Counted from the stretch's first letter, positions 1 through 41,767 are shown. The stretch is DNA of 41,767 nucleotides from Trichosphaerium sp. ATCC 40318 (GCA_038496445.1 JALMLS010000595.1:1-41767), one strand, 5' to 3'. Translations and numbers: made by a program. The notes: generated by a model from the sequence alone, not told the origin.

Positions 1-1343
1 CTTTCAAAGACAATACCTGTTGTTGGTGTATCAGATGGTGCGGCTGTTGGCACTGATGTTGGCAAAACTGAAATGAACAATATTGTTATATCTTTGTTAA
101 GTTTAACAATATCCTTACCTGTAGGTGCTGCTATCGTTGTAGGTACTGTTGGTGGGTCTATCTCACATATAAAGAGTTCTGTTCTGTCACAAGTAATATC
201 ACCCCACAATACCCCTGCAGTATAATTGCGCATGAATACACAATTTTCTTTGCTGTCGTGTTTTCCAGGCTCATTTTCCTGCCAAGGTACTACAAAAAAC
301 TCTCTTCCAAAATCAAGTGGCTCATTCGTTACTGCCTTTGTATGTGTTAATTGATAGTAGGGTTAAGACCTATTAGTACCCATTGAAAGTCAAGGTGAGT
401 TCTGTATCCACTTGTCAATCCAATCATTGCAGTATAACCTCGATCTACACTTTCTAGAGGTAAAATAGTTCCAATGAACTTATACTCCTCATCGCTGTTG
501 ATTGTAACAAGATATCCGCCTTGTTGCAAACAATGACCTGTTTGATAAGGTTATTACTATTTACTTTGCAGAGTACCTTGGGCTTCAGGCCATGTATAAC
601 GCATTTCAAAAGGATTATAGCAATGATCTATATTAAATCAACAAATAACGGAGAACGAAACAAGTTTTTAACTGAATACCTGAGCTCATATGCTCACAAG
701 ATATATTTTGTGATATATCTATGCAAGGTTTTGATACTGGTATAGTATCACTGGAGGGTGCTTCACAAACGAAATGATCTGAGGAGCAATTACCGTTTTG
801 TATGATCTACCACAAAATAGGTGATTTAATACTGTTTGCCAAACCTATTGTACGCACGCCTCCCAGAAGTGTAGGGCAATTACTGTCGTTTATAACACTT
901 CCTTGATATGCTACACCCATTGCAATGTTATTGACAAGCGAGTTATCATACCAAAAGTAATCAATACTGTTTGAAGTGGTAATATTCAAACGTAATCGCT
1001 AATCGACCTTTTAAAACAAAACACGTGATTTGGAGATAAAAAAAAACCCACGTGATTCGTTCATCGGTTAGTTTTGTGGACGTACGGGAAATAAAGTCAT
1101 TACAGATGCTTCCATAATACTGTCTAGTACAAGAGGATTGAATCCTAACCAAGGAAAATGTAATTATTACGGTAAATAAGGCTATTCAGTTTGGCTCATA
1201 CCCATTTCGCACGAATCGTTGTCTGTATCATTATGGAGCGTGTATGTTGTATTTTCCCAAGTACACCTTGAAATAACTGCGCACGTGCCCATAGTTATGT
1301 AAACATATAAAGCGAGTGCAGACAGAGCATTACTTGAGGTCAT
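1..1343 (-). CDS. Tandem C-type lectin-like surface protein, copy 1 (multi-exon; 3' end runs off the window)
   Basis: ATG at 1343 and signal peptide, then RCTWENTTYTLHNDTDNDSCEM. Later exons read YFWYDNSLV..NCPT, C.QQGGYLVTINSDEE..IGLTSGYRTHLDFQW and AVTNEPLDFGREFFVVPWQENEPGKHDSKENCVFMR..WGDITC..FICE (CTLD W/EPx/ENC/WxD/FICE pattern). Introns are GT-AG, about 50-90 nt. Confidence 0.8.
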
Positions 1344-3373: not shown

Positions 3374-5109
3374 TCACAATATCAGAAACAACATTACAAG
3401 AAGTAATGCAGTGCACATAGTAAGTCTGGGAGAGCCACACTCGAAAGTTGAAATATTAAGGGTGCTTAACAGTGATGTAGATGATCTTGTTTGCTCTTGA
3501 CACTGCTTTGTACCCAAGAGAACCATTGGTGTCACTGCTACACACTCTGTTTTTTGTGATATTAATACCGAAGCAACCTATAAATACACATGTGATTAAA
3601 TTCTATAAAGACAATATTGGTTGTACCCTGACTGACTTTACATCAACAATAAATGTTCCAATAATACAACCAGTCACATTGACTATTGTATTAGTGTTTC
3701 TTATCTGAAGTGTCGTATTACTGAACCTAACAGTGCCTATGATAAAGAGTTGAGTTAGTACAACATACATCCCAACCACACAAGTACCATTAACAACAAG
3801 ATTTGAGTCTAGTACAACAACACTATCAGGTGTAAACTCTACAACATATTAGTAACCAACCTGATTACTCACACTAGTGTTTATGTACGTGTTGGAATTT
3901 GTTCTATCTCACATATAAAGAGTTCTTCTCTGTGACAAGCTATATCAGCCCATATTACTTTCGTAGTATCGTTACGCATGATCACACAATTTTCCTTAGT
4001 ATCGGCGGTGGTTGATGGCTCATTTTCAAACCAAGGGAATACAAAAAACTCCCTTCCAAAATCACGTGGTTCATTCGTTACTGCCTTTGTATGTGTTAAT
4101 TGATAGTAGGGTTAAGACCTATTAGTACCCATTGAAAGTCAAGGTGAGTTCTGTATCCACTTGTCAATCCAATCATTGCAGTATAACCTCGGCTTAAACT
4201 TTCCAGAGGTAGGATGCTAGCAATGAAATTGAACTCATCAGTGCTGTTTATTGCCACAAGGTATCCGCCTTGCTGTAAACAATGAGCTATTTGCTATAGT
4301 TATTCTCTATTTGTATATAGCACAGACTTTTTCTAGACCTTACCTTGAGCTTCAGGCCATGTGTATCTCATTTCAAAAGTGTTGTAGCAATGACCTGGTA
4401 AATAATCAAAAAAATGAAATAAAATCGTCACACTACCCGAAATAAAGCTGTAGTGATCACAAGGTATGTTCTGTGCTACATCTATACACGGTATTGATAC
4501 TGGAGGTACATCACTAGAAGGTGCTTCACAAACGAAATGCTCAGTGGTACAATTACTGTTGTGTACGAACTAGAAAGAAGTGAGATAAATGAAGATAAAC
4601 TTGAATAATGTCACAGCACGAAATGCACTCACGCCTCTATGTAGTATAGGACAGTTTGTGTTATTAATGGTACTCCCTCGAAATGTTATATCCAAAGCAA
4701 TTGTATTTACAAACGAGCTATCATACCAAGAATAATCTGAACTTCCTTGAGATATATTTAACCTTAGCTGCTAATAACCCTTTATTAAAAAAAGACACGT
4801 GATTTCGGAGATTCAATTAATTTTTGCCTCGTGGACGTACGGGAAATAAAGTCATTATAGATGCTTCCATTATACTGTCAAGTACAAGAGGGTGGTAGCC
4901 TAAAGTCGTAAAAACGGTTTAGAGCTTATTAATGAGTACAATAAATACAATCTTTACTACAACATACCCATTTCGCATGAATCATTCCCTATATCGTTAT
5001 GAAGCGTGTATGTTGTATTTTCCCATGTACATCTTGAAATAACCTCACAAGTGCTTGTAGAGATATTAATATACAAAAAGATTACCAGCAGGGCAAATCC
5101 GGAACTCAT
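3374..5109 (-). CDS. Tandem C-type lectin-like GPI-type surface protein, copy 2 (multi-exon)
   Basis: ATG at 5109 (MSSGFALLVIFLY..SRCTWENTTY). Ligand exon AVTNEPRDFGREFFVFPWFENEPSTTADTKENCVIMRNDTTKVIWADIACHREELFICE. Hydrophobic C-terminus and TGA at 3374. Confidence 0.8.
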
Positions 5110-5457: not shown

Positions 5458-7268
5458 TTACAATATAAAAAATAGAATGATTATCAGTAATGCAGTACAA
5501 ACAGTAAGTGTTCTACTGCTACACTTGAAAACCTGTATATTGAGAGTGCTTGATAGCAATGACGATGTTCTTGTTTGATCAAAGCATTGGTTTGAACGCA
5601 AGAGGACCATTGGTGAGATCTCTGTACATTCTTTTAGATGCGATAACATAATTGAACCTGCCTATAAAATAACATGTGCGTAAGTGTTTCGTATAGGATA
5701 TTTGAGTTGGTACCTCAATTGATGTTGCATCGATGTTAAAAGTGCCAACTATACAGTCGCCCACTTCAAATATTGTATTTGTTTTGCTCAGTTGAAGTGT
5801 TGTGTTATTGAATCTAGCTGTGCCTTCAAACGTATATTAGATTGTAACGATTCCTGGTTCTAAAAATTACCATCAATAGAAATATCAAAATCGAGTAGGA
5901 CAACACTGTCAGTTGGTATAAAATCTAACTACAAGTTAGTAACTAACACTTGGTATTTTAGTTGAAACAAACCTGTTGTTGGAGCATTAGATGGAGCATC
6001 TGTTGGCGTGGATGTAGGTAAAACTGATAAAATATTAATATTTCGCAACTTCATCACATACGTGTTGGAGCTGGTTCAATCTCACATATAGAGCGAAACC
6101 GTCTATCACATGTTATGTCATGCCAAGTAAAATTTCCTGTTGTGTCGTTCCGCATAATTACACAATTTTCCTTGCTTGTATTGAAGAATTGTGGTTCGTT
6201 TGGTCCTTGCCAAGGGAATACATAAAATTCTTGTCCAAAATCACGTGGTTCACTCGTTACTGCCTAAGTGTATGCGTTAGTTATACAAATCGGCAAAATA
6301 TAATAGTACCCATTGAAAGTCAAGGTGATATCTGTATCCACTTGTCAATCCAAGTACTATAGAAGTTATGGGATAGTCGTAAGGGAAAATACTTTTAATA
6401 AAATCAAACTCTTCAGCACTGTTGATTGTTACAAGGTATCCATTTTGTTGTAAACAATACGCTATTATTGTAATTAGAGTATAATTTGTATACAATAGTA
6501 CCTTGAGCTTCAGCCCATGATAAATACGACCCAATAGAGTTGTAGCAATGATCTGTGATCTGCTTTAATAAAAGGGAGAATACTAAAAAAGTTTCTTTTC
6601 GTTTATAATACCTGTATCGTTGTTGGGGTGCTCACAAGGTACGTTATCCGATATCTCTACGCAAGGCGTTGCTACTAGTGGAACATTGCCAGAGGGAGCT
6701 TCACAAACGAAATGATCTGATGTACAACTATTTTGAATGAACTATCAAAAAGATTAAAAATTATCAACAAATTTTGAGAAAAAACATTGTACGCCTCTAT
6801 CGAGTGTAGGACAGTTGGTATCATTAATAGGGTTTCCTCTATATTCAATCAATTGTTCCATAGCGATGTCATTGACACGCGAGTTATCATACCAAAAGTA
6901 ATTAAGACTGTTTGAAGTGGTGATATTCAAACGTAATCGCTAATCAACCTTTTTAGCAACAAACACGTGATTTGGAGATAAAAAACAAGATAAAAATTTG
7001 TGCTCTCGTACGGGAAATAAAGTCATTACAGATGCTTCCATAATACTGTCAAGTACAAGAGGGTTAAATCCTACGAGAAAATAAATAAGTGGCGAAAATA
7101 AAGGTCCTTTCTCATAGAAAAGTTACCCATTTCGCACGAATCGTTGTCTGTATCATTATGGAGCGTGTATGTTGTATTTTCCCATGTACACCTTGAAACA
7201 ACTGCGCACTTGTAGTTGGAGATGTAAATAACCATAAACAGTGCGAACCAGGCAAGTCTTGAAGTCAT
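5458..7268 (-). CDS. Tandem C-type lectin-like GPI-type surface protein, copy 3 (multi-exon)
   Basis: ATG at 7268. Ligand exon AVTSEPRDFGQEFYVFPWQGPNEPQFFNTSKENCVIMRNDTTGNFTWHDITCDRRFRSICE. C-terminus CSSRTLTVCTALLIIILFFIL*. Confidence 0.8.
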
Positions 7269-11489: not shown

Positions 11490-11995
11490 TTGACATCAAG
11501 ACTTGCATTATTCGCACTGTATATGTTAATTTACATCACCAACAGCACGTGCGCAGTTGTTTCAAGGTGTACATGGGAAAATACAACATACACGCTCCAT
11601 AATGATACAGACAACGATTCATGCGAAATGGGTAATGTTTTAATGAGAAAGAACTTACTCGCATTTTATTTGCCCTAACATTGCTTTGTTAGCTAGGATT
11701 CAATCGTCTTGTACTAGACAGTAAACATGGAAGAATCTGTAATTACTTTATTTCCTCTGTATGAGAATGCTATAGAAATCACAGACTATAATTGTGGTTA
11801 TCACAAAAAAAAAAAAAAAAAAAAAAAGGCAACCTTCTCCCTCTTTTTAAAGGCTTTACAGGTCATTGCTACAGCCCTGTTCGCTTGAGGTACACGTGGC
11901 CTAAAGCTCAAGGTACCCTACAAAAAAATAGTATCTCTGAAATATTAATATATTAATAGTTCATCTCAAGGACATTGTTTACAACAAGGTGTACT
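11490..11995 (+). pseudogene. Lectin-family pseudogene (copy 5)
   Basis: Exon 1 homologue starts with TTG instead of ATG. Exon 2 is degraded, middle exons are replaced by a segment with an A-run, and it ends after CLQQG. Confidence 0.75.
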
Positions 11996-14364: not shown

Positions 14365-14369
14365 TAATT

Positions 14370-14386: not shown

Positions 14387-14516
14387 ATTTGAACCATAAA
14401 TATAGCGATTGTTAAGTATAAACAAAAAACTTACAAATTGGGGGCAAACGCTTTAAAACACGTGTTAAAGCTCTCCTACAACAACAGAAATCGACTCGCT
14501 TTCAGTAGTAAGTCGT

Positions 14517-14832
14517 GGGGCAGTACATCTCCTTAATACCTGTACAAACAAACGGTACGCGCGTCTAACGCAGTACCGGGGGCAGTACATCTCCTTAAGA
14601 CCTGTACACAAATTTAATTGAGAGACACCTTTGACTTGGGTGTTTCCAAACGGTACGTGCTCTAAACGCACTACTGGGGGCAGTACATCTCCATAAAACC
14701 TGTACACAAAATTAATTGGTAGGTACCTTTGACTTGGGTACCTCCAGGGGCAGTACATCTCCATAAAATCTGTACATAATCGGTACGTCAAAAGACAACG
14801 CCGGGGGCAGTACATCTCCTTAAAATCTGTAC
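14517..14832 (+). repeat. Five 29-nt repeats GGGGCAGTACATCTCCwTAAnAyCTGTAC separated by hairpin-forming spacers (retroelement 5' leader)
   Basis: Copies start at 14517, 14579, 14677, 14747 and 14804. Spacers are 33, 69, 41 and 28 nt. Confidence 0.9.
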
Positions 14833-14983
14833 TTCTGAAAACGAACGCTTTCACACGGACAAAAAGTTTAGACGGCAAACGTCCTTCTGTGCGCAGGTAT
14901 CTAAAGCGCACCACGAAAGCTACGTACCACTACAAAACATAAAAATTGCTTTTGTAAGAAACATTATTTGATCACGATTAGTC

Positions 14984-16801
14984 ATGTCAAATAATTCGAA
15001 TGACCAGATGATGCAAATCCTGTTAAACCTTCAGTCACAGATGCAACAGACTCAAAATGAGATGCAGCGACAGGGTCAGGTTATAGCAAACCTATCACAA
15101 CGGGATCAGCCATCTACGAAGTCTCCTACTATTGCTGCGACGACTTCACCTTACCGACAACCATCGAGTTTTCTATACGCTACACCTCACATTATGGCAC
15201 AGCGACAACATCAGAGACAGATGCAGTATCTGTCTACACAACCTCAGATGACTCCCTTTTTGCCGAGAACACAGATGTCATATCAACCGACTGGTCAACA
15301 ATTACAGTCTGTACCACGAACCACAACTGTACAGCAGCCGATGTCAAGGCCTCCAGCAACTCCGTTTGTTTCCAGAACAGCCACTGTCACCACAAAGACA
15401 GTGAAGAAGAAGAATTTTCCAAAGAAGAAGAAGGACGTTCCAAAAGAAAAGAATGTTGCAACAAAAAGAATAAAAAGAAGGTTTATTCTACCAACAAAGA
15501 TTCCTGTGGAGACAGGACAAGTTACAAAACTTTGGAACAACGCTTTGGCTGAATCTAAGAAGAATATTCAACCAGCTATATTGGACAGTCAAGCTACGAA
15601 GGAACAGATTGCTGATCGTGATAAAACTTATAAGCAAAATCAACATGATTATGCTGTTCAGTATTTTGGTAATCTCTGTGTTGCTTATGCTAGAGAGAAA
15701 GCACAGACAGAGTTAGACAAGTTCTTTGCTAGAGAAGGTAAAGAAGAAGAATCAATTAGTGATTCAGAAAGCGAGACAGACGAAGATGACGAGGATGACG
15801 ACGATGATTCATTCGACTTCACAGAAATTCGCAAAGCCTTACCTGAAGATCCTAAAGTGACACCAAGTTCTTTACCACAACCAAACTTTGGTACTAATCC
15901 TATTATTCCTCAAGCACAGCCTTACATGATGCCGCAATACCAAGTTCCAATGCCAGGTTATCCGAATATTATCACCAACAACGCAAGTGATAATGAAATT
16001 TTCTTTTATGGAAAACCAGGTGAAAATGTCTTGAGATGGATTGCTGATATATCTGCTGTTGCTACACGTAGTCCTACGACTGTCCAGATGTTTATTGGAC
16101 TTATCGAAAAGAACCTGAAGGGTTTTGCAAAAGATTATTACAAAGATCAATTCCCTGGTGGTGCGGTCGAAGGACAAGAGAATGAAGTTTTTGAGAAACT
16201 TCAAAATTATTTTTCTTCTGAAGTAACAAGAGAAGGACTTCGACATGCATTCAAGAGCTACGTTCAAGATCAACTACCAGTATTGCAATACGCAGCTAGA
16301 AAAGGAAGAAAAGCTAACGATGCTGGCTATCATATCAACCACCAGACGCGTATCAAATATTTTATTAAAGGACTCAATCCTGAGATACAAGAACATCTGA
16401 GGAAAGAACGATACAAGTGGGAAGATTGGTCCGAATGTGTTACTAGAGCACATCACATTGAAGCGGCTATTAATGATACTAAGAAAGCTGTTGGAGATAA
16501 GAAGAAAGATAAGAAACCAAAGCCTAAGCCGAAACCAAAGACGAAGACCAGCGAAGAACAAACCGACAAAACAAAAGCCGATTGGTCTGATCCAAATGTA
16601 CAACCAAATCCTAGAACACATTGGTGTGTACATCACAAGAAATGGAGTTATCATACCTCCTACAAATGCGAATTGAATCCGAAGGTCATAGCCAGGAAGA
16701 AAAGACGAGCTGAACGAAAGAAGAAAGCTGAAGAAGAGAAAGATGTCACAGTTGCTTCCATCAAGACCGAAGAATCAGGTGAAGATTCGGGAAACGAGTA
16801 A
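14984..16801 (+). CDS. gag: Retrotransposon Gag
   Basis: 605-aa ORF after the leader. It has a capsid-like region (FYGKPGENVLRWI...NLKGFAKDYY...FIKGLNPEIQ) and a basic C-terminus with a Cys/His cluster. Confidence 0.9.
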   Translation: MSNNSNDQMMQILLNLQSQMQQTQNEMQRQGQVIANLSQRDQPSTKSPTIAATTSPYRQPSSFLYATPHIMAQRQHQRQMQYLSTQPQMTPFLPRTQMSYQPTGQQLQSVPRTTTVQQPMSRPPATPFVSRTATVTTKTVKKKNFPKKKKDVPKEKNVATKRIKRRFILPTKIPVETGQVTKLWNNALAESKKNIQPAILDSQATKEQIADRDKTYKQNQHDYAVQYFGNLCVAYAREKAQTELDKFFAREGKEEESISDSESETDEDDEDDDDDSFDFTEIRKALPEDPKVTPSSLPQPNFGTNPIIPQAQPYMMPQYQVPMPGYPNIITNNASDNEIFFYGKPGENVLRWIADISAVATRSPTTVQMFIGLIEKNLKGFAKDYYKDQFPGGAVEGQENEVFEKLQNYFSSEVTREGLRHAFKSYVQDQLPVLQYAARKGRKANDAGYHINHQTRIKYFIKGLNPEIQEHLRKERYKWEDWSECVTRAHHIEAAINDTKKAVGDKKKDKKPKPKPKPKTKTSEEQTDKTKADWSDPNVQPNPRTHWCVHHKKWSYHTSYKCELNPKVIARKKRRAERKKKAEEEKDVTVASIKTEESGEDSGNE

Positions 16802-16853
16802 AAGACATTGCATTTGGCTCAAGCAATGTCACTCGTGAACATACTCCAGAGCC
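16789..16853 (+). promoter_or_regulatory. -1 programmed ribosomal frameshift signal
   Basis: Slippery G GGA AAC (16789-16795) in the gag frame, an 8-nt spacer, then stem GACATTGC/GCAATGTC (16804-16830). Loop GGCTC can pair with GAGCC (16849-16853). The -1 frame is open into pol. Confidence 0.85.
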
Positions 16854-19800
16854 TTTTGGAGATGTAACAACACACAATAAAGAAGTTAGATCAAAACGTG
16901 TTGTCAATTCTCCAAGCCCTCCTTCTTACGTCCTGGCCCATATAAACCAAGCTCCTATAGTGTCATATTTGGATGGTGGATGCGATAAATCTATCATTCA
17001 CTCCTCTTTTCTTAACAACTTACCAGAAGTAGAAGTACTATCAACTACAGCGCAAGCTAGTACTTTGAATTCGAACAAATTCAAGCTGGATGGTATTGTT
17101 TCCGTTTCTCTTTCCTTTGGAAATCAAGAACAAAGATTAGTAGAATTATACGTGACATCAGATATGGAAGAAGTCTTGGTTATTGGACGTGACCTACAAG
17201 AAAGATTTAATATGAGTGTCAACTATGCTAAAAGAACAGTTACATTTGCAGATGATTCAACTATTCCAATTATCAACCGATCCAATAAAGAAGGAGAAGT
17301 TCGTCTCCTATACTCAAGAGATCAGATACAGATATATCCGAAAGAGACAGTGATTTTGACTATGAAGTTTCGTAGTCAGTTACCAGATGGAACAGTTGGA
17401 ATAGTCACACCGGTTGGCCCGATATGGAAAAGAACTAGATTAGTTACTGGACCTATTATATCTGTCATTAATAATGGTCATTGTGTTATGCAAATAACCA
17501 ACTTGTCTGAAAAGACAATAAACATTCAACCAGGTCAACGACTTGGTAAATTTCAAACTCAGAAGTCTAAAATGCTGGTTAGAGGATTAAGAACAATCGA
17601 ACAGATTAACGCATATAAAGCAACTCAAGCAGAGCTAGATTTGGTGGAAGAATACTTTGGTGAGCAACTTAAGGAATGTGCTATCAAAGACGAAGAAGAA
17701 CTTCATACTATTCGCAACCTATTGGCTACGCATTTGAAGTCGTTTGATATAGCCTTAAACAAACCTCCTAAAACGGCCGTACGCATGCATATTAATACTG
17801 GTGACTCACAACCAGTTGCCACAACTCCACGACGTTTTCCTAAACGTTATGTTGAGTTTATAAGGAAATTTATAAAAGATTATTTGAAGACTGGACTTAT
17901 CAGGCCTTCTACAAGCCCCTGGGCTTCACCTATAGTCATCGCTCCAAAGAAAGATGGTACATTGCGATTCTGTATCGATTATCGTGGACTGAACGCAATC
18001 ACTAAGAGAGATGTCTATCCAATTCCCAACATTGATGATGCTTTTGATGCATTGGTTGGAAGTCATTACTTTTCAGTAATGGATGCTTTGTCTGGGTTTC
18101 ACCAACTACAGATGGATGAAGCATCGATTGAAAAGACAGCGTTTGTAGACCAATCTGGTCTATATGAGTGGACTGCAATGCCTTTTGGATTAACGAATGC
18201 ACCTGCTACTTGGCAACGCTATATGAACTTAGTCTTAGCAGGTCTCACCTGGCAGATCTGTTTAGTATATATTGATGATATCATTGTATACTCTAAAGAC
18301 TTCAAAACACATATTCAGAGATTAGACACCGTTTTAACGCAACTGGAGAAATTCAACGTTAAACTTAAACCAAAGAAATGCAAGTTCTTCATGAAGGAAC
18401 TTAATTACTTAGGGCATGTAGTTACTAACAACGGAAGAAAACCTGATCCTGCAAAAATTGAGGCTATAGCTAGAATGCCTCCTCCTAGTGGAAAAAATCG
18501 ATTAAAACAACTCCAAAGATTCTTGGCGATGATCAAGTATTATGGATGTTACGTTAATAATCTAGCTAAAAGATCATATCATTTACGCATTTTAACTCAT
18601 AAGAATGCTGAATGGGTATGGAGAAAAGAGCAACAAGATGCCTTTGAAGACCTTAGAAAGTGTTTAGTAATGGAACCTATTGTATTGGCTTATCCAGATT
18701 TCGATAAAGAATTCGAACTCCACACTGATGCTTCAGATGAGGGTCTTTGTGCAATCTTAACGCAAAGAGATGATGATGGTAAAGAGAGAGTTGTATCTTA
18801 TTATTCTCGATCGCTCAACAAGGCTGAACGAAACTATTCAGCTTCCGTGAAGGAAGCGCTGGCGGTGGTGGCTGGTGTTAGAAAATTTAGACCTTATTTA
18901 TTATCTAAACATTTCACAATCTGGACAGATCATCAAGCTTTGGTTTGGTTCTACCGACACCAAAACCCTGATGGAAAAATGATTAGATGGTCTATATTCC
19001 TCTCAGCATATGATTATACTATCAAACATAGACCTGGTGTAAAAAACGCTAACGCAGATACTGGGTCTCGGTCTCCTGTTATTTCTATCGAAGATGCTCC
19101 AAAGAAAGAATTTGAAGTCAACGAAATCTATACTCCTGTTATTCAAGCTAGAGGAGTTTCGATCTTTCCTGGGCATGTGGTACATAGGAAACCAGTTCCA
19201 GAACCATTACTTCGATTATATTATTTACAAAGACAAGACGCTTTTATGAACAAACAAATAATGTATTTACAATCTCCCGATGTATTCAAGTATTACAAAG
19301 ATGTAGAACGTTTAACTAGAAGCACGAAAGATCTTTGTCTTGACGATTATGGTATACTTTGCAGGAAGTGGATACCTCCAAAGTCTCAACGATCCGATAA
19401 AACCGAAAGAATCCAAACAGTTGTTCCTACACAGATGAGATTGGAACTACTTAGGTTAAACCATGATATCCCTACCTCAGGACATCTGGCAGTTAAACGT
19501 ACTTATCTTAAACTTATGGATAAGTACTGGTGGCCTAACATATGGTTGGATGTTAATCAATATGTTAAAGGATGTACACAATGTCAGACTAAGAAAATCG
19601 ATCGGTGAAAGAAGTTAGGTGGACCAATGGGAACAGTTACTTCAAGATGTCCGATAGATGTTATTGCCGCGGATTTAATCACAAAGTTACCGCGTACCAG
19701 AAACGACAACGTTTGCATTTTGGTGGTTATGGATTACTTCACCAGATATGCTAAGTCTATTCCACTTCCAAACAAAAGGGCATCAACAATTGCACGTGCA

Positions 19801-20916
19801 ATTTATGATGAATTTATATTAGAACATGGAACACCTAACATATTTCTCTCTGATCAAGGTGGTGAATTTAAAAATGTACTTAAGGAACTTATGAAGTTAT
19901 TAAATGTCGACCAACGCCAAACCACAGCATATAGACCTCAAACGGATGGATTGGTTGAAAGATTTAATGCTACCTTAGTTAACATGATAAAGATGTATTG
20001 CAATGACAACCAGACAGATTGGGATGAATATGTAAGACCTTGCACATTCGCTTATAACACATCAGTTCATGAAGAATTAAAAGAAACACCTTATTTCCTT
20101 ATGCATGGTAGAAGAGCAGTATCGTCTTGGGATCAGGCTTTAGGACGAGTATCTACCAAATCAAAAGATAAATATATTAAAAACATTGCAAAAGTGATAA
20201 AGAAAACACATGAAACGTCAGCTATGCTTAGACAGAAAGCATATCAGAGACAGAAGAAACGGTATGATGAGAAGCATCGTACCAAGACATTTTCTGTTGG
20301 ACAAAAAGTTTATTTACGCGTTAACAAGAAACGTGATGTACCATGGGGTAAATCACGAAAGCTTTTTAAGAACTATTCCGGAGTATATTATATTGCTGAA
20401 GTTAAAGGACACCATAACTACCGTATTGGAGTCATGAATAAGGATGGTACTAAAGGACCTATCATCCCAGATGTCTATAACGTTGATCGACTCAAGGAGC
20501 ACAATGAACAAATTTCCGGCGATACAGATAAATTAGTTCAAATAGTAGAAGCTATACCTGTTCTTTCTCCTGCAGAGAAAGCATATGCTAAAGAACAGAG
20601 AGAAAAAATTACAACGAAGGATAGTAATCTTACTATCACTAAGAAAGTAAGCCCTTTTAAAGATGCTTTATTAGAAGTATACAATGCTGTTTCACAACGC
20701 TCTGAAGCGGGTTCAATCACAAAAAAGGTCTTACAGGTTTACAAAAATACACTACATGATCTTATCGCTGGCGATCTTTCCATGTTTGTTACGAGAAATT
20801 CCAGAAGAAATTATTTCAAAGGACAGTTGAAGAATGTTACCACAGTGAAAAAATTTCTGGATTACATGGACTCACTCATTTCCAATTTCGAGACTATCTT
20901 TAAGTCTGAACTATAA
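16789..20916 (+). CDS. pol: Retrotransposon Pol (PR, dUTPase-like insert, RT, RNase H, integrase) with one in-frame TGA at 19606-19608
   Basis: YLDGG protease, SPWASP/RFCIDYR/MPFGL/YIDD RT, TDAS..KEALA..TDH RNase H, HHCC zinc finger and DDE core (ADL..SDQGGEF..GLVER). The two track ORFs (16960-19608 and 19627-20916) are in the same frame. Confidence 0.93.
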
Positions 20917-20935
20917 CTATGTATGGGTTCAGTTT

Positions 20936-20944
20936 GGAGGGGTA
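20936..20944 (+). other. Polypurine tract
   Basis: GGAGGGGTA immediately before the 3' LTR. Confidence 0.7.
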
Positions 20945-21024
20945 TGTCACGATATTTGACATGTACTTATATAGAATAAAACACACTTAACTACAACTCG
21001 TACCTCGCACCTTTTCTCGTAACA
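20945..21024 (+). repeat. 3' LTR (80 bp)
   Basis: Identical to the 5' LTR and followed by the TSD AAGGT. Confidence 0.95.
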
Positions 21025-23357
21025 AAGGTGACCTTGGCACTACTTTTTCTATGTATTTATACGAGCGAAAGCACGTGCTCAGTCGTTTCGAGGTGTTTTT
21101 GGGAAAATACGACCTACACGCTTCATAATGATACAGATAACGATTCATGCGAAATGGGTATGTTATAATAAATGGGTAAATGACTTTTACTTACCAAAAG
21201 TTTTTTACGGATTTAGGCTACAATCCCCTCAAACTGGACAGTATTATGGAAACATCAGTCATGACATTATTTCCCGTACGTCGCGTAACATCTTTTGAAG
21301 CGACTTGGATTTTTCTTCAAATCACGTGGTTTTTAAAAAGTTGTTTAGCCGTTACGTTTGAATATAACCAGTTCAAACGGTACTGCTTTTTTTTGGTATG
21401 ACAACTCACTTGTAAGTCCCATGGCTATGTATAGAGCGTATCCTATAAGTTTCATTGATGATAGCAACTGTTCTACACTTGTAGGAGGCGTGAGTGCTTT
21501 TTTTTCTGTAGCGTGAGATGGTGTTTTATTGATCGCTTTTACATAGTTCATTGCAAATACTTGCACCTCAGAACATTTTGTTTGTGAAGCACCTTCGGAC
21601 ACTGTCCCTTTTGTATCTACACCTTGTTTTAATCCAATACCAAGTGTATGTGAGTACAGGAGCTCTGTTTCAGGTATGTAGAAAATGAATCAAGAAATAT
21701 TTTGTCTGATACAAAATTTCTTTAATTGATGTTTAGATTCTTGCTACAATCCTGTTTCAACACGTCGTACATGGCCTCAAGCACAAGGTACATAAAAAAA
21801 TTATCGCATTTATAAACAAATACAAGTTCTATTAGAACAGTACAATAACTTTTACAATAGCGCATTGTTTACAACAAGGTGGATATCTTGTTACAACCAC
21901 CAACGATGATGAGTTGGATTTTATTTCTGGTTTGATACCACCAGGTGTACAAAACTGTACATGGACTGGATTGACAAGTGGATATAGAAACGATCACTTT
22001 GACTTTCAATGGGTACTCCCACAAACTATTAAGTCTTAAGGGGCACGTGCCCCTTAAATCACAAGTCAATTTAATCCAAAATACACTTAGGCAGTAACAA
22101 ATGAACCACGTGATTTTGGTGATGTATTTAAGGAACACCCTTGGAGTCCAGTTGAGCCAAATGATCATACAATTGATGGCGGTATCAAAGAAAATTGTAT
22201 TATTATGTGCAATAGTAGGCCAAGTATATGGGCTGATGTACATTGCTATCGGGGCGAGTTCTTTATTTGCGAGATTGAAATACCCAAGGGTATGCTGAGA
22301 TAAGTGATTTGTCCGTCAGTAACTGGTTTTTTGTAGGGTCTTTTATACCTACTAACAGTGTAGTTGTAATAGACTCGGATCTTATTATTGATGGTAAGTT
22401 ATTTCATGTTTACACTCACACTGATTCTTTTCAAGGTTTGGCACTGTTCAGCAACACAACACTTCAATTAAGAAAAACCAATACAATATTTAATGTGAGT
22501 TCATGTATCATTGGGGAGTTTAACATTGATACAACATCTGTTGAGGTACCACACCTGAATTAATTGTCACGTGATCAAATTAATCGCTCAATATATTTAT
22601 AGGCAGCTGCAATACAGATATCACAACTAAAAGGATGTGACGAAGTTGATCCAATGGTTTTCTTGGGCAGAAATCAGTGTCTTGAGCAAACTAGATCATC
22701 TACATCACTGTTGAGCACTCTCAATGTAGCAGTTTTAAAATGTAACAGCCATAAGCTTACTCTGTGCGCTGCATTACTTCTCATCATAGCTTTTTTGGTA
22801 TTTTAGGAATAAAAAACTATTCTCAAAGAACCCATGTACAAGTTAGCAGAAATATGAACTGAGAATGTTCAGCTCTGGAGGTTATGTGTCAATGAAAACT
22901 GATTAACAGTATCAACATCATCAGTGCAATAAATGAGTTACAAAGAAAGAATGTGTAGTCCATTGCAGTCACTCGAACAGCAGAAAAAAATTGTACTAAC
23001 AAAATTAAATTCCTCAGCTCTTCATCACGTTAAAAGACAGTCGGCAGTTTAACGCTTGTTCCCCATTGGCGTTGGCAAACAACACAATACACAAGTATAG
23101 TCTACTAAAACCAATAACATAATTATCTAGTCAATGCAGTAGAAGATTGTGAGTCCCCCATAACATGTTCAAATTCAAAAAAAAAAAGCAGAAAAAAGAA
23201 GGAAAAAACTGATTACAATTCTACAACCTTATTTCTTCTTTATTACCAACCCCTCTTCATACAACATATCTAATATAACCCTATTTCTTTCAATAAGGGA
23301 TACAAATACAAAATAAAAAAAGTACAAGGGTTCTGTAATAACATAAAAAAAACCAGA

Positions 23358-26764: not shown

Positions 26765-27636
26765 TCATAAAAATACCAAAGTCATAACAAGAAGTAATGT
26801 AGTGTACACGGTGAGTCTGCGACTGCTACTCTTGAAAACATCGATGTCAAGAGTGCTCAGTAGCAATTTGATGATCTAGTTTGCTCAAGACACTGATTTG
26901 TACCCAAGAAAACCATTGGATCACCTTCGTCACATCCTTTTAGTTGTGATATCTGTATTGAAGCTGCCTATAAATACATTGAGTGATTAATTTGATCACG
27001 TGACAATTAATTCAGGTATGGTACCTCAACAGATGTTGTATCAATGTTAAACTCACCAATGATACATGAACTCACATTAAATATTGTATTGGTTTTTCTT
27101 AATTGAAGTGTTGTGTTACTGAACAGTGCCAAACCTTGAAAAGAATCAGTGCGAGTGTAAACATGAAATAACTTACCATCAATAATAAGATCCGAGTCTA
27201 TTACAACTACACTATCAGTAGGCATAAAAGACCCTACAAAAAACCAGTTACTGACGGACAAATCACTTATCTCAGCATACCCTTGGGTATTTCAATCTCG
27301 CAAATAAAGAACTCGCCCCGATAGCAATGTACATCAGCCCATATACTTGGCCTACTATCGCACATAATAATACAATTTTCTTTGATAGCGGGCTGTTTAT
27401 ATCATGAGGCTCATCTGAGCCCCAAGGGTGTTTCTTAAATTCATCACCAAAATCATGTGGTTCATTTGTTACTGCCTAAGTGTATTTTGGATTAAATTGA
27501 CTTGTGATTTAAGGGGCCCTTTAGACTTAATAGTTTGTGAGAGTACCCATTGAAAGTCAAAGTGATCGTTTCTATATCCACTTGTCAATCCAGTCCATGT
27601 ACAATTTTGTACAAGTGTTTCATCTGGTGGTATCAT
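26765..27636 (-). pseudogene. 5'-truncated lectin-family pseudogene (copy 7), inverted near-duplicate of the 3' half of copy 6
   Basis: Exons and introns are nearly identical to ~21935-22700. It lacks the 5' exons and has an apparent frameshift between EPHDINSP and IKENC. Confidence 0.8.
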
Positions 27637-31009: not shown

Positions 31010-31643
31010 ATGGCATCAAAAGGTGTTTTTCAACTGAAGGATACTTTACAAATCAAGGTATGCCGTTGCTATTAGTAGTTTTACTTACAACTTTAAACAG
31101 GTGAAACATTTATTAGACCTTCCTGTAGAGTTACATCTTTATATTATGGATATAGACTTTGAAGTGTATGTAAAGTGGCCTGGTTTATCTAAATACACAG
31201 CAATAAATACAAGATTTGATTCAGACATGAAAAAACAAGGTAGATGGTTAAGAAAGCGATGGGTTGTGGCTACATCAAACATGTTACTATCACAAAGTGT
31301 ACTTCAAACTACATTTGATGAAAATAGAAAGAATGGCGAAGAGAAGGAGTGGTACGAAACTGGACAACTCAAAAGACAAACTACATTTGTTGATGATAAA
31401 AGAAATGGAGAATCAAAGAAGTGGTATGAAAATGGACTACTGGCTGAACAATTCTTCTTTGTAAACGATAAACAAGAAGGAGAACAAAAGATATGGTTTG
31501 AAAATGGCCACTTGAAGACACAATCAAATTACGTCCATGGTAGACAACATGGGGAATACAAGTGTTGGTACATAGATGGCACGATGTCTCAATGGGGATA
31601 CTACATATCAATATTCAGTCAAAATGAAGAACAAACAGAATAA
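31010..31643 (+). CDS. F-box-like + MORN-variant repeat protein (exons 31010-31057, 31101-31643)
   Basis: MASKGVFQLKDTLQIK, intron gtatgc..aaacag, then VKHLLDLPVELHLYI..TRFD and 24-aa repeats (GE.K.WYENG.L). Confidence 0.8.
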
Positions 31644-35144: not shown

Positions 35145-35890
35145 CTATTGTTGACTCAAGGTATCATTAAAGTAGTATAGCTTGCTCCGCAATTGCCCAT
35201 TGAAACTCCAACGCTTGCACTCACCTTCTTTTTTACCATTCACAAAATAGCATTGGTCTCTCAATTGGCCATTTGCATGCCAACGCTTGCTCACTCCTTC
35301 TATTTTACCATTGATATAAAATACCTTCTTCTTCAGTTGACCATCAGTATGCCACTCTTTGCACTCTCCTTCTAGTACACCATTGGAATAATTGCGGTCC
35401 ATAGATACTTGACCATTCCTATAGAACTGCTTGTACTCTTTGTCTTTTTTACCATCTATGTAATTTAGCTGTACCCTCAATGTACCATTAGAATAGTACC
35501 TCTTGATCTCTCCTTGTCGTTTACCATTCACAAAATACCTTTGAGATGAAACTTGGCCGTTATCATACCAACTCTTTGAATTTCCATGACGTAGACCGTT
35601 TTTGAAAAACACGTGCCATAACACATTTTGGTTTTTAAATACTGTTTTTTTTATCCATTTCCCATGTTTATTCAACTCGTTGTCAAACCTTGTTGTTGTT
35701 GCTGTGTATTTTGATAACAACGACCACTTTTGATAAACTTCAAAGCTTAAATCAATGATTTCACAATGTAATTCCAACGGAAGACACAATAGAACGCATT
35801 TCTCTGATAGTAACTAATTTTTATTGTTATTAGCCGTAGTATGCCATCTTTATACCGTACGCTGTATGTTAATGTACTTTTAGATGTCAT
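35145..35890 (-). CDS. F-box-like + MORN-variant repeat protein, close paralogue of 12213-13175
   Basis: MTSKSTLTYS, intron, then LLSEKCVLLCLPLELHCEII. Identical N-terminal block to the paralogue but fewer repeats. Confidence 0.85.
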
Positions 35891-36162: not shown

Positions 36163-37895
36163 TTACAAAAGCAAAAATACCATGACAAGAACTAATACAG
36201 TACACATAGTGAGCGTTCTACTGCTACACTTGAAAATATCTATATTGAGATTTCTCACTAGTGATGTGGAAGATCTTGTTTGCTCTTGACACTGGTTTCT
36301 ATTCAAGAGAACCATTGGAGCAACATCTTCACATCTTATAAGTTGTGATATCAGTATTGAAGCCACCTACAAATATATGTGTTACGCTTAAGGCTAAAGT
36401 GAGAGATAGTGATGTACTTCAATTGATGTTGCATCAATGTTAAATGTACCAATGATACAGCTTCCTACTTCAAATATTGTATTTGTTTTGCTCAGTTTGA
36501 GTGTTGTGTTATTGAACCTAGCATCTCCTGTCGAAGCCTGTTAGTATCAGCGTGTATGAGCAAACAAAGTACCAACAATAGAGACATCAAAATCGAGTAC
36601 AACAACACTATCTGTTGGTATAAAATCTAACAACAAACATTAGCAAATGCACTGTATTTTTTCCTACTGCAAAAAGTTGTTACCTGTAGGTAGTGTAGTA
36701 CGTGAAATTGAATCAAGCTCACATACAAAGAAGTGAGGAATCTCACAAGGAAGATCAGACCAGGCTACCCCCCTTGTAGTTTCATTGAGCATGTATACAC
36801 AATTTTCATTAGAAGCAATGTCTTGGCTTGGCTCCGAGCTATGCCAGGGAATTTGAAAAAATACTTGTCCATAATCAAGAGGTTCATTCGTTACTGCCTT
36901 TGTACTGGTGTTAATTGATTGTAGATTTCAAGTTAGGAAATATCAAGTACCCATTGAAAATCAAGGTGCTCTCTGTATCCACTTGTCAATCCAATTAGCG
37001 GCCGTGAAGTTGTAAGAGTAAAAGGTACAATATTTCTAACAAAATTAAACTCCTCAGTGTTGGTGATTGTCACAAGGTATCCGCCTTGCTGTAAACAATA
37101 TCCTTTTGATAAAGTTATTTATGATATGTAATTTGCAAACAGTACCTTGAGCTTGAGGCCATGAGTGTCTCACACTAACAGGGTTGTAGCAATGACCTGT
37201 TCAATGAAATAAGTTAAATACAAACTTAACATGATTGTTCTTCAATACCTGAAACGTTGTTGTAGTGATCACAAGATACATTCTGTTGTATCTGTATACA
37301 AGGAGTTGTTACTAGTGGAACATTGCCAGAGGGAGCTTCACAAACGAAATACTCTGAGTCACAAGCATTTGTTATGATCTATCAAAAACGATTAAATGTT
37401 GTTTCGTAAACATATTGAACGCACGCCTCCCTCAAGTGTAGGGCAGTTGTTATCATTTATGACGCTCCCAGGATATGTAAATCTCATAGCGATGGTACTG
37501 ACAAGCGAGTTGTCATACCAAAAATAATCAATACTGTTTAAAGTGGTAATATCTAAACGCAATCGCTAATCAACCTTTTAACAACAAACACGTGATTTGA
37601 ACGAAAAGTGAAATAAATTTTGTGTTATCGTCGTACGGGAAATAAAGTCATTACAGATGCTTCCATAATACTGTCAAGTACAAGAGGATTGAATCCTAAC
37701 GGAGTAAATAAATAATTAGGGAATAATTAGGTCCGTTCTCTTAGAAACAATACCCATTTCGCATGAATCATTGTCTGTATCATTATGGAGCGTGTATGTT
37801 GTATTTTCCCAAGTACATCTCGAAACAACTGCACACGTGCTTATGGTGATGTAAATAAACACAAACAGCGAGAATAAGGTAAATCTTGAAGTCAT
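36163..37895 (-). CDS. Tandem C-type lectin-like GPI-type surface protein, copy 8
   Basis: ATG at 37895. Ligand exon AVTNEPLDYGQVFFQIPWHSSEPSQDIASNENCVYMLNETTRGVAWSDLPCEIPHFFVCE. Hydrophobic tail. Confidence 0.82.
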
Positions 37896-38841
37896 ACGAT
37901 ATTCGAAGATGAAAAAATCAACTATGAAATGTATGAAAATAAGAAAATGTGCAGCAGATTTATGGAACTCCGATAGAGTTAAAACACACTGTGGAACCTC
38001 CAACTGCAAGTACAGCTTATGATATTGAGAATACAAAATAGGGTTACTGGGCCACACGTGTTCCATATTTATTCAGTTCCAAACGTCTAAACACCTATAA
38101 AACACACACAAACGAACGTACAGCAGTTAAAAGGCTAAATAAGCTAAACTGTTGGTGTAAAACTCCGCGGAATAGTACTCCATGCGCTTAAGCGTATGCC
38201 ACGCAACATCTACTTCAAGCTTGGCCCAATTAGCACCACAACGTAAATTCATAATGGCTCCTAGTTAGCAGTCTTTTATACTTGTATTGTATTATCCTAT
38301 CTTAACACGTTGCAATGTTATTTGTGTTAGCGCTTTCTTTGTTTCAGGCTTTCTGGTAGAGCTTCGTATTCTCATACTAGTGACTCTCCAATACCATCCA
38401 GAAGTGTTATGATTGCCCACTTGACAGTGCTACTGAAGTCACATACCTCCAATGCTGCCTCGTGTTAACATTGCATTGTATTTACATACTTAGTCTATAT
38501 TAAGATCACCATCACCTTGACACGTTTAACTTTGGTTTTGTTACTCCCAAAGTTCAATTGGAGACTTAGTGTTCTTTGATGTCAACAGAAACGGCACTCA
38601 AGTTAAAGTAATGTTACTAATGTTGAAGTTGTTCTAAGCAAGTATATTTTGTATTTGTTCCTCAAACCATGTGATTTCTTGCTTCCAATGATAACGTATT
38701 ACTGTGCTATGGCACTATCCATTCTGGTAAAAACGCTATCTACCCGATTGGGTTAGAAGATATGAGATATCAATACCAATAAACAACCTTCTAAGGAAAG
38801 AAAAAAGTATAAAATGATGATTTGTTTAGATTTTATTCAGT

Positions 38842-40724
38842 TTACACAAGCAAAAACACCATGACAAGAACTAATACAGTACACACAGTGAGCGTTCTAC
38901 TGCTGCACTTGAAAACATTTATATTGAGAGTGCTCGAAAGCGATGTAGCTGTTCTTGTTTGCTCAATACACTGGTTTCTACTCAAGAGAACCATTGGAGC
39001 AACCTCTTCGCATCCTATAAGTTGTGATATCAGTATTGAAGCTGCCTACAAAATATGTGTTATGCTTAAGACTAAAGTGAGAGATAGTAGTGTACATCAA
39101 TTGATGTTGCATCAATGTTAAATGTACCAATGATACAGCTTCCTACTTCAAATATTGTATTTGTTTTGCTCAGTTGAAGTGTCGTATTTTTGAACCTAGC
39201 ATCTCCTGTCGGCCTGTTAGTATCAGCGTGTAATAACTACCATTGTACCATCAAGAAAAACATCAAAATCGAGTACAACAACACTATCCGTTGGTATAAA
39301 ATCTAACAACTAACATAAGAAGACATTTAACCTGATACTATGGTGTACTGTGTACCCGTTACTAGTTCATCAGTTGGGGCTGAAGTTGGCATTGCTAAAA
39401 AACAGTTAACAATTTCTTTTCTTTACCAAAAAGTCTGTACCTGTTGATGGTGTATCTGTTGGTGTGGATGTTGGAATAACTAAACAAACTCGAGTTACAT
39501 ACAAATGACAAGCAAACTGTCTGTACCTGTAGGCGGTAGTGTAGGACGTGGAATTGAATCAAGTTCACATATGAAAAATTCTGCTCTGTCACAAGTAATA
39601 TCAGCCCAACCTATCCCCCTTATAATTTCAGTACGTATGAATACACAATTTTCATTGGAATTAGAGTCTTGTTCTGGCTCTAAAACCAACCAGGGAGTTT
39701 GAAAAAATACTTTTCCATAAACAAAAGGTTCATTCGTTACTGCCTTTGTACTGGTGTTAATTGATTGTAGATATCAAGTTAGGAAATATCAAGTACCCAT
39801 TGAAAATCAAGGTGCTCTCTGTATCCACTTGTCAATCCAATTAGCGGCCATGAAGTTGTAAGAGTAAAAGGTACAATATTACTAACAAAATTAAACTCCT
39901 CAGTGTTGGTGATTGTCACAAGGTATCCGCCTTGCTGTAAACAATATCCTTTTGATAAAGTTATTTATGCTATGTAATTTTGCAAACAGTACCTTGAGCT
40001 TGAGGCCATGAGTGTCTCACACTAACAAGGTTGTAGCAATGACCTGTTCAATGAAATAAGTTAAATGCAAACTTAACATGATTGTTCTTCAATACCTGAA
40101 ACGTTGTTGTAGTGATCACAAGATACATTCTGTTGTATCTGTATACAAGGAGTTGTTACTAGTGGAACATTGCCAGAGGGAGCTTCACAAACGAAGTTCT
40201 CTGATATGCAAGTATTTCGTATGAGCTATCAATAAAGCGATTAAAAATGGTAGCCTAAACCGATTGTACGCACGCCTCGTTCAAGTGTAGGGCAGCTGGT
40301 ATCATTTATGACGCTCCCAGGATATCCTGATTCCATAGCGATGGTACTGACAAGAGAGTTGTCATACCAAAAATAATCAATACTGTTCGAAGTGGTAATA
40401 TTCAAACGTAATCGCTATTTAGCGGTAAATCACGTGATTTGAACGAAAAGTAAAATAAATTTTGTGTTGTCGTCGTACGGGAAATAAAGTCATTACAGAC
40501 GCTTCCATAATACTGTCAAGTACAAGAGGATTGAATCCTAAAGAGTAATAAATAATTAGGTCCGTTCTCTTAGGAACATCACCCATTTCGCATGAATCGT
40601 TATCTATATCATTATGGAGCGTGTATGTTGTATTTTCCCAAGTACACCTCGAAACAACTGCGCACGTGCTTATGGTGATGTAAATAAACACAAACAGCGA
40701 GAATAAGGTAAATCTTGAAGTCAT
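38842..40724 (-). CDS. Tandem C-type lectin-like GPI-type surface protein, copy 9
   Basis: ATG at 40724. Ligand exon AVTNEPFVYGKVFFQTPWLVLEPEQDSNSNENCVFIRTEIIRGIGWADITCDRAEFFICE. Two extra stalk micro-exons. Confidence 0.82.
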
Positions 40725-41234: not shown

Positions 41235-41767
41235 TCAGCTCCAATAATTACTATCCCATTTAACTTCATGTACACCAATCAATACCTTGGCACCCTCTTT
41301 AGTTGCACGTGTATCATATAAGGTAATGGTATGAACACCAACTAAGTACTTCAAACATTCATATGTAATTATAGTTCTTTCTAATTCAATCTCATGAACA
41401 CCAGCCAATGCCTCTACACCCTCATCTGTAATTGAAGTACTATGTAAATCAATTGTATGAACACCAGCTAAAGCCTTGATACCCTCATCTGTTATATTGA
41501 CACAGTATGACAGCCTAATAGTATGAACACCAGCTAACGCCTTCAAGCTTTCATCTGAAATGCCATCACAGTCACGTAAGTTAATTGTATGAACACCTGC
41601 CAAAGCCTTGACGCCCTCATCTGTAATATAATCACATTCTGATAAGTTAATAGTATTTACGCCCTCCAATAAGTACAAGTGCTTATCACTGATATCTCTT
41701 GAAATGAAAACAGTCTCAATAGAGGTGTTTTGAAGCAAAGGGCTTCCAGAAAGAAGATATTCCCCTT
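41235..41767 (-). CDS. Leucine-rich repeat protein (5' part outside window), paralogue of 1771-2898
   Basis: Repeats of ALAGVHTI.L..C..ITDEG.K. Confidence 0.85.
   Translation of the reverse strand, partial: GEYLLSGSPLLQNTSIETVFISRDISDKHLYLLEGVNTINLSECDYITDEGVKALAGVHTINLRDCDGISDESLKALAGVHTIRLSYCVNITDEGIKALAGVHTIDLHSTSITDEGVEALAGVHEIELERTIITYECLKYLVGVHTITLYDTRATKEGAKVLIGVHEVKWDSNYWS

Follow-up and report, generated by a model that had tools for sequence, protein, structure and literature searches.

Near-identical introns beside divergent ligand exons: gene conversion in a tandem family of C-type lectin-like genes of the amoeba Trichosphaerium

Why should neighbouring genes be almost identical across several introns and yet strongly divergent in the coding exon next to them? 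The question is raised by an array of genes encoding a C-type lectin-like domain (CTLD) in Trichosphaerium sp. ATCC 40318 (GCA_038496445.1, JALMLS010000595.1), found on a complete 41.8-kb contig (41,767 nt; labelled C299 and hereafter the window) of a 70.3-Mb assembly in 642 contigs, AT-rich (GC ~36%) and belonging to a eukaryotic genome. A preliminary description, drawn up from the nucleotide sequence, had proposed that these paralogues form a diversifying surface-receptor repertoire shaped by gene conversion and by positive selection on the ligand-binding exon, here exon 7. On balance, and with modest confidence, we regard the array as a tandem family that has probably diversified by duplication and short conversion, and that would supply a germline repertoire of surface binding proteins with differing specificities. 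The adaptive part of this account is not proven.

The gene model used throughout was built by comparing six window copies with ~20 further paralogues, in all of which GT-AG sites and open frames are conserved. Each gene comprises 10 to 12 exons (E; introns, I). E1-3 code for a start resembling a signal peptide and for an N-terminal region with cysteines, E4 closes that region (F-V-C-E) and opens the next domain, and E5-7 supply the remainder of a long-form CTLD, which is spread over E4-7; 3' of E7 lie zero to several 39-nt, threonine/proline-rich (T/P-rich) mini-exons and then three further exons. Part of what had been taken for I5 is coding, since E6 starts further upstream than first read (39948 in copy c9, 37102 in c8) and carries the alpha-1 cysteine (Y-C-L-Q-Q-G-G). 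Where the numbering of copies had run to nine, tblastn with exon translations recovered six (c1, c2, c3, c5, c8 and c9) and the fragments c4 and c6. Across the whole genome there were 35 exon-7 matches, haplotype duplicates included, in arrays on contigs C72, C48 and C299 and as singletons on C136, C91, C106, C10, C193 and C39. The window is a second haplotype, or very recent duplicate, of the C72 array, whose interval C72:226275-259753 is collinear with C299 (95-98% identity). The c9 region exists in a third version at C48:1-4746, contig C48 beginning exactly at the c8/c9 similarity junction. This collinearity reduces the number of distinct loci from 35 to ~25, and ~22 paralogues have frames open over E1-7.

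The contrast that had drawn attention to c8 and c9, about seven differences over ~460 bp beside a divergent exon, is real. Positions 36890-37348 and 39738-40194, covering E4-6 and I4-6, align over 460 columns with six substitutions and four gap positions, and a recount of the 61 codons of E7 returned the same 26 replacement and four purely synonymous differences. Counted by segment, c8 and c9 differ at 5/142 sites in E1, 9/45 in I1, 1/59 in E2, 9/64 in I2, 16/141 in E3, 10/46 in I3 and 10/130 in E4, then at only 1/52 in I4, 1/51 in E5, 1/43 in I5, 2/152 in E6 and 1/53 in I6, and at 47/210 in E7. Comparing introns only, which takes coding constraint out of the test, 3/148 sites differ in I4-6 vs 28/155 in I1-3 (Fisher p = 1.8e-6). 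Identity in 50-bp windows was 94-100% within the tract, 66-78% in E7 and 72-88% upstream, and the tract so delimited is 470 bp long with ~98.7% identity (Table 1). At two of the replacement differences inside it, the c9 alleles on C72 and C48 have the c8 state. A second pair, c1 and c2, behaves likewise. The intron and flank that they had been described as sharing (325-441 vs 4075-4191) differ in 2/118 columns, and the identical run measures 121 nt. The remaining c1/c2 introns differ at 113/257 sites (44%), and given p = 0.44 the probability of the observed I6, with no differences in 44 sites, is 8.5e-12.

The pattern recurs across the family. Among 210 non-allelic pairs, nine had at least one intron that was at least 90% identical, most frequently I6 (five pairs), and in five of six close pairs (c8/c9, c1/c2, L011/L014, L014/L017 and L025/L026) I6 was 91-100% identical but E7 only 76-86%. 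Triplet comparisons located further switches. Paralogue L014 (G000:C48:29071-32280) is L017-like upstream (32/33 informative sites; none of 300 permutations equalled that score), L011-like from E1 into the first part of E7 and L017-like again from mid E7, a three-part mosaic that points to a recombination or conversion switch within the ligand exon. When c8 and L005 (on C136) were the alternatives, c9 was c8-like at 93/95 decisive sites from E4 through I6; in E7 it was L005-like at 28 sites vs c8-like at 25, with the L005 affinity concentrated in the 3' half. Similarly, the likeness of c1 to c2 was confined to the 3' half of E6, I6 and the first third of E7. Exon-7 silent divergence (dS) among c8, c9 and L005 is 0.35-0.55, vs a whole-gene dS to L005 of 0.36-0.46. 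The simplest history would be an old c8/c9 duplication whose scaffold, and not its E7, was later re-homogenised by conversions. Gene conversion, as first proposed, is thus strongly supported by several independent pairs.

Conserved residues are also encoded uniformly, the identical codon being used in 80-100% of paralogues in E1, E2, E6 and the start of E7 (e.g., G-L-T-S-G-Y-R and A-V-T-N-E), and this despite saturation of overall silent divergence among distant members. The scant silent variation in conserved blocks would fit either constraint at the nucleotide level or micro-conversion that has occurred repeatedly.

The identity of the encoded domain was assessed by searching Pfam Lectin_C (PF00059) exon by exon, with a cut-off of 22.6 bits. 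E6 matched profile positions 11-52 (20.3 bits, E = 9e-4) and E7 matched positions 68/71-106 (16-22 bits, E = 3e-4 to 0.02); singly each falls slightly below the cut-off, and the matches are consecutive and collinear. A family profile of E7 (A1, 22 paralogues) retrieved mannose receptor CTLD4 (E = 1e-9) and mannose-binding protein A (MBP-A; E = 1.4e-7), that of E6 (A2, 21 paralogues) retrieved the PLA2 receptor (E = 3e-22), and P0066, a public protein from one paralogue discussed below, bears PF00059 in precomputed annotation. Of the CTLD cysteines, C1-C4 (in YCLQQGG, E-N-C, W-x-D-x-x-C and F-I-C-E) show little or no variation, the long-form C0-C0' pair is present upstream (C...(G)xCY), and in the WIGL-type motif (W/L)IGLTSG the G, L, S and G are invariant. 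Judged by these homologies, the family carries a genuine CTLD.

Alignment to MBP-A equates EPx with E185-P186-N187, ExC with E193 and WxD with W204-N205-D206. The equivalents of E193 (E-x-C) and D206 (W-x-D) are invariant in 22/22 paralogues, and that of E185 is E in 19/22, D in two and Q in one. The window motifs given earlier, EPG, EPS, EPQ, EPN, EPH, EPS and EPE with WGD, WAD, WHD, WAD, WAD, WSD and WAD, were recovered unchanged from tblastn matches; across the family EPx reads EPE, EPS, EPG, EPQ, EPN, EPH, DPG or QPQ (EPS in c8, EPE in c9). Neither c8 nor c9 has the canonical EPN or QPD, copy 5 alone among window copies has EPN (with WAD), and WND occurs in no copy, its place being taken by WAD, WSD, WGD, WHD, WVD, WID or WRD. 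The two variable positions are the Asn sites that ligate Ca2+ and sugar in MBP-A. As this canonical pair is not conserved, monosaccharide binding or lectin activity is not to be assumed, and the suggestion that the EPx and WxD triplets act as sugar-specificity codes is doubtful.

The predicted protein consists, in order, of a signal-like N-terminus (MTSRFTLFSLFVFIYITISTCA), a ~135-residue Cys domain, the CTLD, a T/P stalk, a ~100-residue C-terminal region and a hydrophobic tail. The C-terminus of c9 reads ...KCSSRTLTVCTVLVLVMVFLLV-stop, and c8 and P0066 have the same layout. The hydrophobic tail is terminal, follows small residues, lacks cytoplasmic residues and looks like a glycosylphosphatidylinositol (GPI)-anchor signal. 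The stalk mini-exons are in phase 1 and encode T/P-rich 13-mers of the PTSTPTDTPST type; c9 has two, c8 none and c3 one, indicating that stalk length varies through exon gain and loss. In exon-wise searches the N-terminal region (E1-4; c9 40724-40096) matched neither CTLDs nor any other entry of Pfam or PDB. The N-terminal domain was considered as a second CTLD and rejected, with no exon-wise match to Pfam or PDB profiles and an hhalign probability of 0.3% against the exon-7 profile; its sole CTLD resemblance is the F-V-C-E-type motif. Independently of protein structure, an 11-nt motif containing the palindrome CACGTG is kept in I2 of all six window copies while the rest of that intron is variable, making it a candidate regulatory or splicing element.

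Evidence for expression comes from P0066 (275 aa, Joint Genome Institute (JGI), from a 1282-nt contig), the product of a spliced transcript of paralogue L024. It aligns to C48:27063-26005 with 100% identity in six exon blocks, the introns being out at the modelled positions. This block structure confirms splicing of I5, I6 and three downstream introns, and the mapping demonstrates transcription of at least one member of the family. A HMMER scan of 1.84 billion representative proteins with the exon-7 profile gave 1278 hits, mostly multi-CTLD animal giants. A word-index protein search returned no match with E7 and, with P0066 whole or its residues 1-135, returned P0066 itself and three ~30%-identical mussel CTLD proteins (E >= 0.008). 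A metagenome scan with the exon-7 profile yielded two chance 12-residue matches, neither a CTLD, and an ESM Atlas search with the P0066 C-terminal region gave no usable match. An AlphaFold2 model of P0066, for which the alignment consisted of E7 only, was poor (mean predicted local distance difference test, pLDDT, 49.6; predicted template-modelling score, pTM, 0.26).

Positive selection on the ligand exon was a further element of the original proposal. Nei-Gojobori estimates for c8/c9 gave dS 0.347, dN 0.276 and a dN/dS ratio (omega) of 0.80 in E7; dS 0.043, dN 0.040 and omega 0.93 in E4-6; and dS 0.161, dN 0.044 and omega 0.28 in E1-3. In other close pairs the exon-7 omega was 0.29-0.70. Silent divergence between c8 and c9 is ~8-fold higher in E7 (0.35) than in the converted block (0.04), and the contrast between their exons therefore mainly reflects coalescence time, or the ends of conversion tracts, rather than a burst of amino-acid change. 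The ratio of 26 to four had looked extreme because E7 offers ~146 replacement vs ~38 silent sites (~3.8x) and codons hit more than once mask silent changes. With omega at 0.80 between c8 and c9 and 0.42 across the family, both under the value of 1 that the preliminary description had named as counting against it, positive selection on the exon as a whole was not upheld.

Codon site models (GY94, F3x4, IQ-TREE topologies, relative branch lengths fixed up to a scale factor), which had been proposed as a check, did favour a positive class in E7 and a comparable one outside it. For E7, M0 omega was 0.42, M2a was preferred to M1a (twice the log-likelihood difference, 2dlnL, = 26.3; p = 2e-6) with 20% of codons at omega 2.5, and M8 was preferred to M8a (p = 1.4e-3). 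For E4-6 the corresponding values were M0 omega 0.41, p = 2.5e-5 and p = 2e-5. E1-3, the N-terminal exons that served as a negative control for the code, showed no positive-selection signal (M0 omega 0.30; M1a/M2a p = 0.34; M7/M8 p = 0.28; M8a/M8 p = 0.19). The signal belongs to the CTLD as a whole, not to E7 alone. Exon-7 sites with an M2a posterior above 0.8 were T16, L19, V20, L21, E24 (the x of EPx), D26, A54, E55 and F56 in c9 numbering. In the HMMER alignment these are MBP-A S179, K182-D184, N187, H189 and S212-T214, around the Ca2+/sugar site. N187 and H189 of MBP-A contact sugar, and residues 211-213 are reportedly the positions mutated to Lys in selectin-like mutants, in agreement with the QKKKT variant chain in the alignment.

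Under the reading that we prefer, duplication and frequent short gene conversion between paralogues would drive the evolution of the family. Conversion would repeatedly homogenise the scaffold and either halt at the loop-encoding exon or shuffle its pieces; divergence at E7 might prevent the heteroduplex from extending, selection might remove homogenised variants, or both effects might operate. On average the binding loops would evolve near-neutrally, diversifying selection acting on a minority of their sites, and the outcome would be germline-encoded surface binders, plausibly serving prey or microbe recognition, rather than somatic or programmed diversification. Several observations weigh against this. 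Omega exceeded 1 neither exon-wide nor loop-wide, and the site-model signal in E4-6 is as strong as that in E7, which is not uniquely selected. Site models are, moreover, open to false positives from recombination, from saturation (tree length 15.7 per codon) and from indel-rich loop alignments. In the pair L016/L019, the exception among close pairs, similarity in E7 is on a par with that over the remainder of the gene. Both the GPI anchor and the signal peptide are predictions from sequence, any carbohydrate binding is hypothetical and the canonical motif is incomplete. In the full HMMER scan with the exon-7 profile, P0066 was the sole family member, and expression evidence for c8 or c9 themselves did not emerge.

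The hardest alternative to displace, although we think it unlikely, is purely neutral: loops would be unconstrained, tracts would end by chance or through a mismatch block, no adaptive diversification would have occurred and some copies would be decaying. A tree-free comparison of ten phylogenetically independent pairs, with loops predefined from MBP-A homology, is compatible with such an account, since the loops had an omega of 0.82 (bootstrap confidence interval 0.59-1.19) vs 0.28 (0.13-0.49) in the framework, and silent divergence, too, was greater for the loops, at 0.525 vs 0.326 for the framework. Exon-wide omega at or below 1 everywhere fits as well, and the fragments c4 and c6, the frameshifted L018 and the start-less c5 point to continuing decay. 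The C72 allele of c8 can be added to these. It is otherwise 99.3% identical (36650-36981 vs G000:C72:254922-254999) and carries two internal deletions, one of 83 nt that takes out the end of E6 together with I6, and one of ~171 nt that extends over the 3' half of E7 and into the beginning of the following intron; it is likely a null allele, and the locus would then show presence/absence polymorphism. Pure neutrality does not readily explain, however, why M2a and M8 beat their nulls in E7 and E4-6 and not, with the same code, in E1-3, why ~22 paralogues retain open frames with invariant Cys, Trp, E-P, E-x-C and W-x-D, or why the candidate sites match the ligand-contact positions of MBP-A. We consider the loops to be under relaxed-to-diversifying evolution, with evidence for positive selection at a minority of sites that is suggestive, not decisive.

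A more ambitious version of the adaptive account is doubtful. It would have ~25 GPI-anchored CTLD receptors in which conversion recombines loop modules and keeps the scaffold uniform, giving combinatorial, selection-maintained recognition of prey, microbes or kin that would have arisen outside animals, on the fold employed for variable binding by animals and by diversity-generating retroelements.

Programmed or ongoing diversification, in which E7 would be hypermutated or swapped from silent donor cassettes as in antigenic variation or diversity-generating retroelements, is very improbable. Diversity-generating retroelements also use the C-type lectin fold, mosaic breakpoints do lie within E7, partial copies such as c6 are possible donors, and I6 with the first 15-20 nt of E7 is conserved and could be a homology anchor. 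Family-wide, however, I6 is not better conserved than other introns (mean identity 0.59 vs 0.56-0.61), and the notion of a family-wide conserved I6 was rejected. On the second and third haplotype contigs, allelic divergence is no greater in E7 than elsewhere: over four loci, silent differences were 3/~144 sites in E7 vs 12/~564 in E1-6, replacement differences were 3/~580 vs 14/~2115, and E7 of c9 is identical in three contigs. The assembly holds no closer donor for E7 of c8 or c9, and the sole nearby reverse transcriptase belongs to an ordinary Ty3/gypsy-type element missing from the other haplotype. The deletions in the C72 allele of c8 likewise point to decay and to a polymorphism of presence and absence, not to a programmed process. 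With alleles identical or nearly so in E7, the antigenic variation or ongoing diversification initially envisaged finds no support. A secreted or surface repertoire is plausible, given the signal-like start, the T/P stalk, the hydrophobic tail and one spliced paralogue transcript.

Least credible of all is an assembly artefact, also raised at the outset, by which the c8/c9 near-identity or the copy number would stem from collapsed or duplicated haplotigs: naive counts do take in haplotype duplicates, as the C72 collinearity and the third c9-region copy on C48 make plain, but the c8-c9 arrangement and its tract are found independently on C72, c8 and c9 have fixed differences inside the tract and strongly differing flanks, and each copy has its own distinct exon 7.

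The coordinates of the window features are collected in Table 1. The array is not purely lectin, as open reading frames (ORFs) with LRR_6 (RNI-like leucine-rich repeat) and MORN_2 repeats are interspersed among the lectin genes. A 6.7-kb Ty3/gypsy-type retroelement with dUTPase, reverse transcriptase, RNase H and integrase ORFs, flanked by an 80-nt perfect direct repeat and missing from the C72 haplotype, adjoins the 5' end of copy 5, the copy that has no ATG at the family start position.

Table 1. Features of the CTLD gene array and its surroundings, in window coordinates
Feature	Position	Strand	Remarks
c9, complete gene	38842..40724	-	5' exons from cross-copy frames and GT-AG sites, 3' exons checked by translation
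c9 E1-E4	40724-40583, 40537-40479, 40414-40274, 40225-40096	-	
c9 E5-E7	40043-39993, 39948-39797, 39743-39527	-	
c9 stalk mini-exons	39479-39441, 39394-39356	-	39 nt each
c9 3' exons	39302-39249, 39205-39096, 39045-38842	-	Last exon includes stop
c8, complete gene	36163..37895	-	Same basis as c9
c8 E1-E4	37895-37754, 37695-37637, 37565-37425, 37378-37249	-	
c8 E5-E7	37196-37146, 37102-36951, 36897-36684	-	
c8 3' exons	36626-36573, 36527-36418, 36366-36163	-	Last exon includes stop; without stalk mini-exon
c9 E7, beta2-to-beta5 part of CTLD	39527..39743	-	EPE, E-N-C, WAD, FICE; Lectin_C 68-106, E = 0.02
c8 E7	36684..36897	-	EPS, WSD; Lectin_C 21.9 bits, E = 3e-4
Conversion tract, c8 side	36880..37352	-	3' part of E4 through I6 and ~17 nt of E7
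Conversion tract, c9 side	39726..40199	-	From windowed identity, segment counts and alignment
c1/c2 identical run, 121 nt	322..442 (c2 side ~4072-4192)	-	E6 end, I6, E7 start
c1 E1-7	132..1343	-	EPG, WGD; 3' end truncated by window start
c2 E1-7	3874..5109	-	EPS, WAD
c3 E1-7	6051..7268	-	EPQ, WHD
c5 E1-7	21016..22298	+	EPN, WAD; no ATG at family start position
c4 fragment	11490..11912	+	Exon-1-like and exon-5-like pieces only
c6 fragment	27273..27602	-	EPH, WAD; inverted partial duplicate of copy 5 exon 6-7 region
CACGTG-containing motif, 11 nt, c9 I2	40431-40441	-	
LRR_6 / MORN_2-repeat ORFs	1771-2874, 35145-35789, 41235-41738	-	
LRR_6 / MORN_2-repeat ORFs	12312-13175, 31101-31643	+	
Ty3/gypsy-type retroelement	14283-21023		
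Direct repeat, 80 nt	14285-14364, 20945-21024		

CTLDs outside animals have been reported before. 'C-lectin' candidates appear among the pattern-recognition receptors of Acanthamoeba (PMC4053784), and CTLD transcripts with variant EPN-type motifs are recorded for Radiolaria (PMC4362344). Those accounts share with the present family an occurrence beyond animals, non-canonical motifs and a proposed role in microbe or symbiont recognition; as far as consulted, they concern single genes or transcripts and contain no tandem array with conversion tracts and loop diversification. Our literature search turned up no report of an amoeba with a tandem CTLD array shaped by conversion, and among public proteins there was no family member beyond P0066, a transcript fragment, so that the family appears to be lineage-specific as far as databases show. 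If the copies bind different targets, a free-living amoeba would possess a large recognition-receptor repertoire built on the C-type lectin fold, which would bear on prey discrimination by phagocytic protists and on the extent to which 'innate-immune-like' receptor diversification is older than animals.

Among solved structures, the best matches to the exon-7 profile are MBP-A and collectins (PDB 1MSB, 1KWT) and macrophage mannose receptor CTLD4 (5XTS), with E values of 1e-9 to 1e-7; these are carbohydrate-recognition domains that depend on Ca2+. As in MBP-A, the equivalents of P186, E193, W204 and D206 and the C2-C3 and C1-C4 cysteines are present, and in the amoeba family they are invariant; unlike MBP-A, the family has E, S, G, Q, N or H in place of N187, and A, S, G, H, V, I or R in place of N205.

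The rodent Ly49 and NKG2 receptors are CTLD families that diversify after tandem duplication. Like such animal families, the amoeba family combines a CTLD scaffold, conserved cysteines and a WIGL-type core with tandem arrays, variability in the long-loop/beta3-beta4 region, gene conversion between neighbours and non-coding sequence that is sometimes better conserved than coding sequence. It differs in its amoeba host and in its architecture, in which a single CTLD follows an N-terminal Cys domain of unrecognised fold and precedes a mini-exon stalk and a tail resembling a GPI signal. Expanded C-type lectin repertoires are known from bivalves (PMC10140915), and 'accelerated evolution' is described for snake-venom C-type lectin-like proteins, or snaclecs (Ogawa et al. 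2005 Toxicon, as cited in PMC6062510; reviewed in PMC6468738). In venom CTLDs dN is reported at or above dS, whereas exon-wide dN/dS in the amoeba family is below 1. The evolutionary mode of tandem duplication, gene conversion and loop diversification is already familiar from animal CTLD families.

Segmental conversion homogenises and reshuffles binding-site exons in exon 2 of major histocompatibility complex (MHC) class II genes and in Plasmodium var genes as well. The present locus, with two to three haplotypes assembled, offers a clean natural case of conversion tracts that end at, or recombine within, a binding-site exon. Unlike the MHC class II and var systems, its diversity lies between paralogues rather than alleles, and neither balancing selection in populations nor switching of expression is in evidence here; like them, it has a mosaic structure in which breakpoints fall inside the exon for the binding site, the flanks are conserved, and allelic or paralogous lineages at that site are old.

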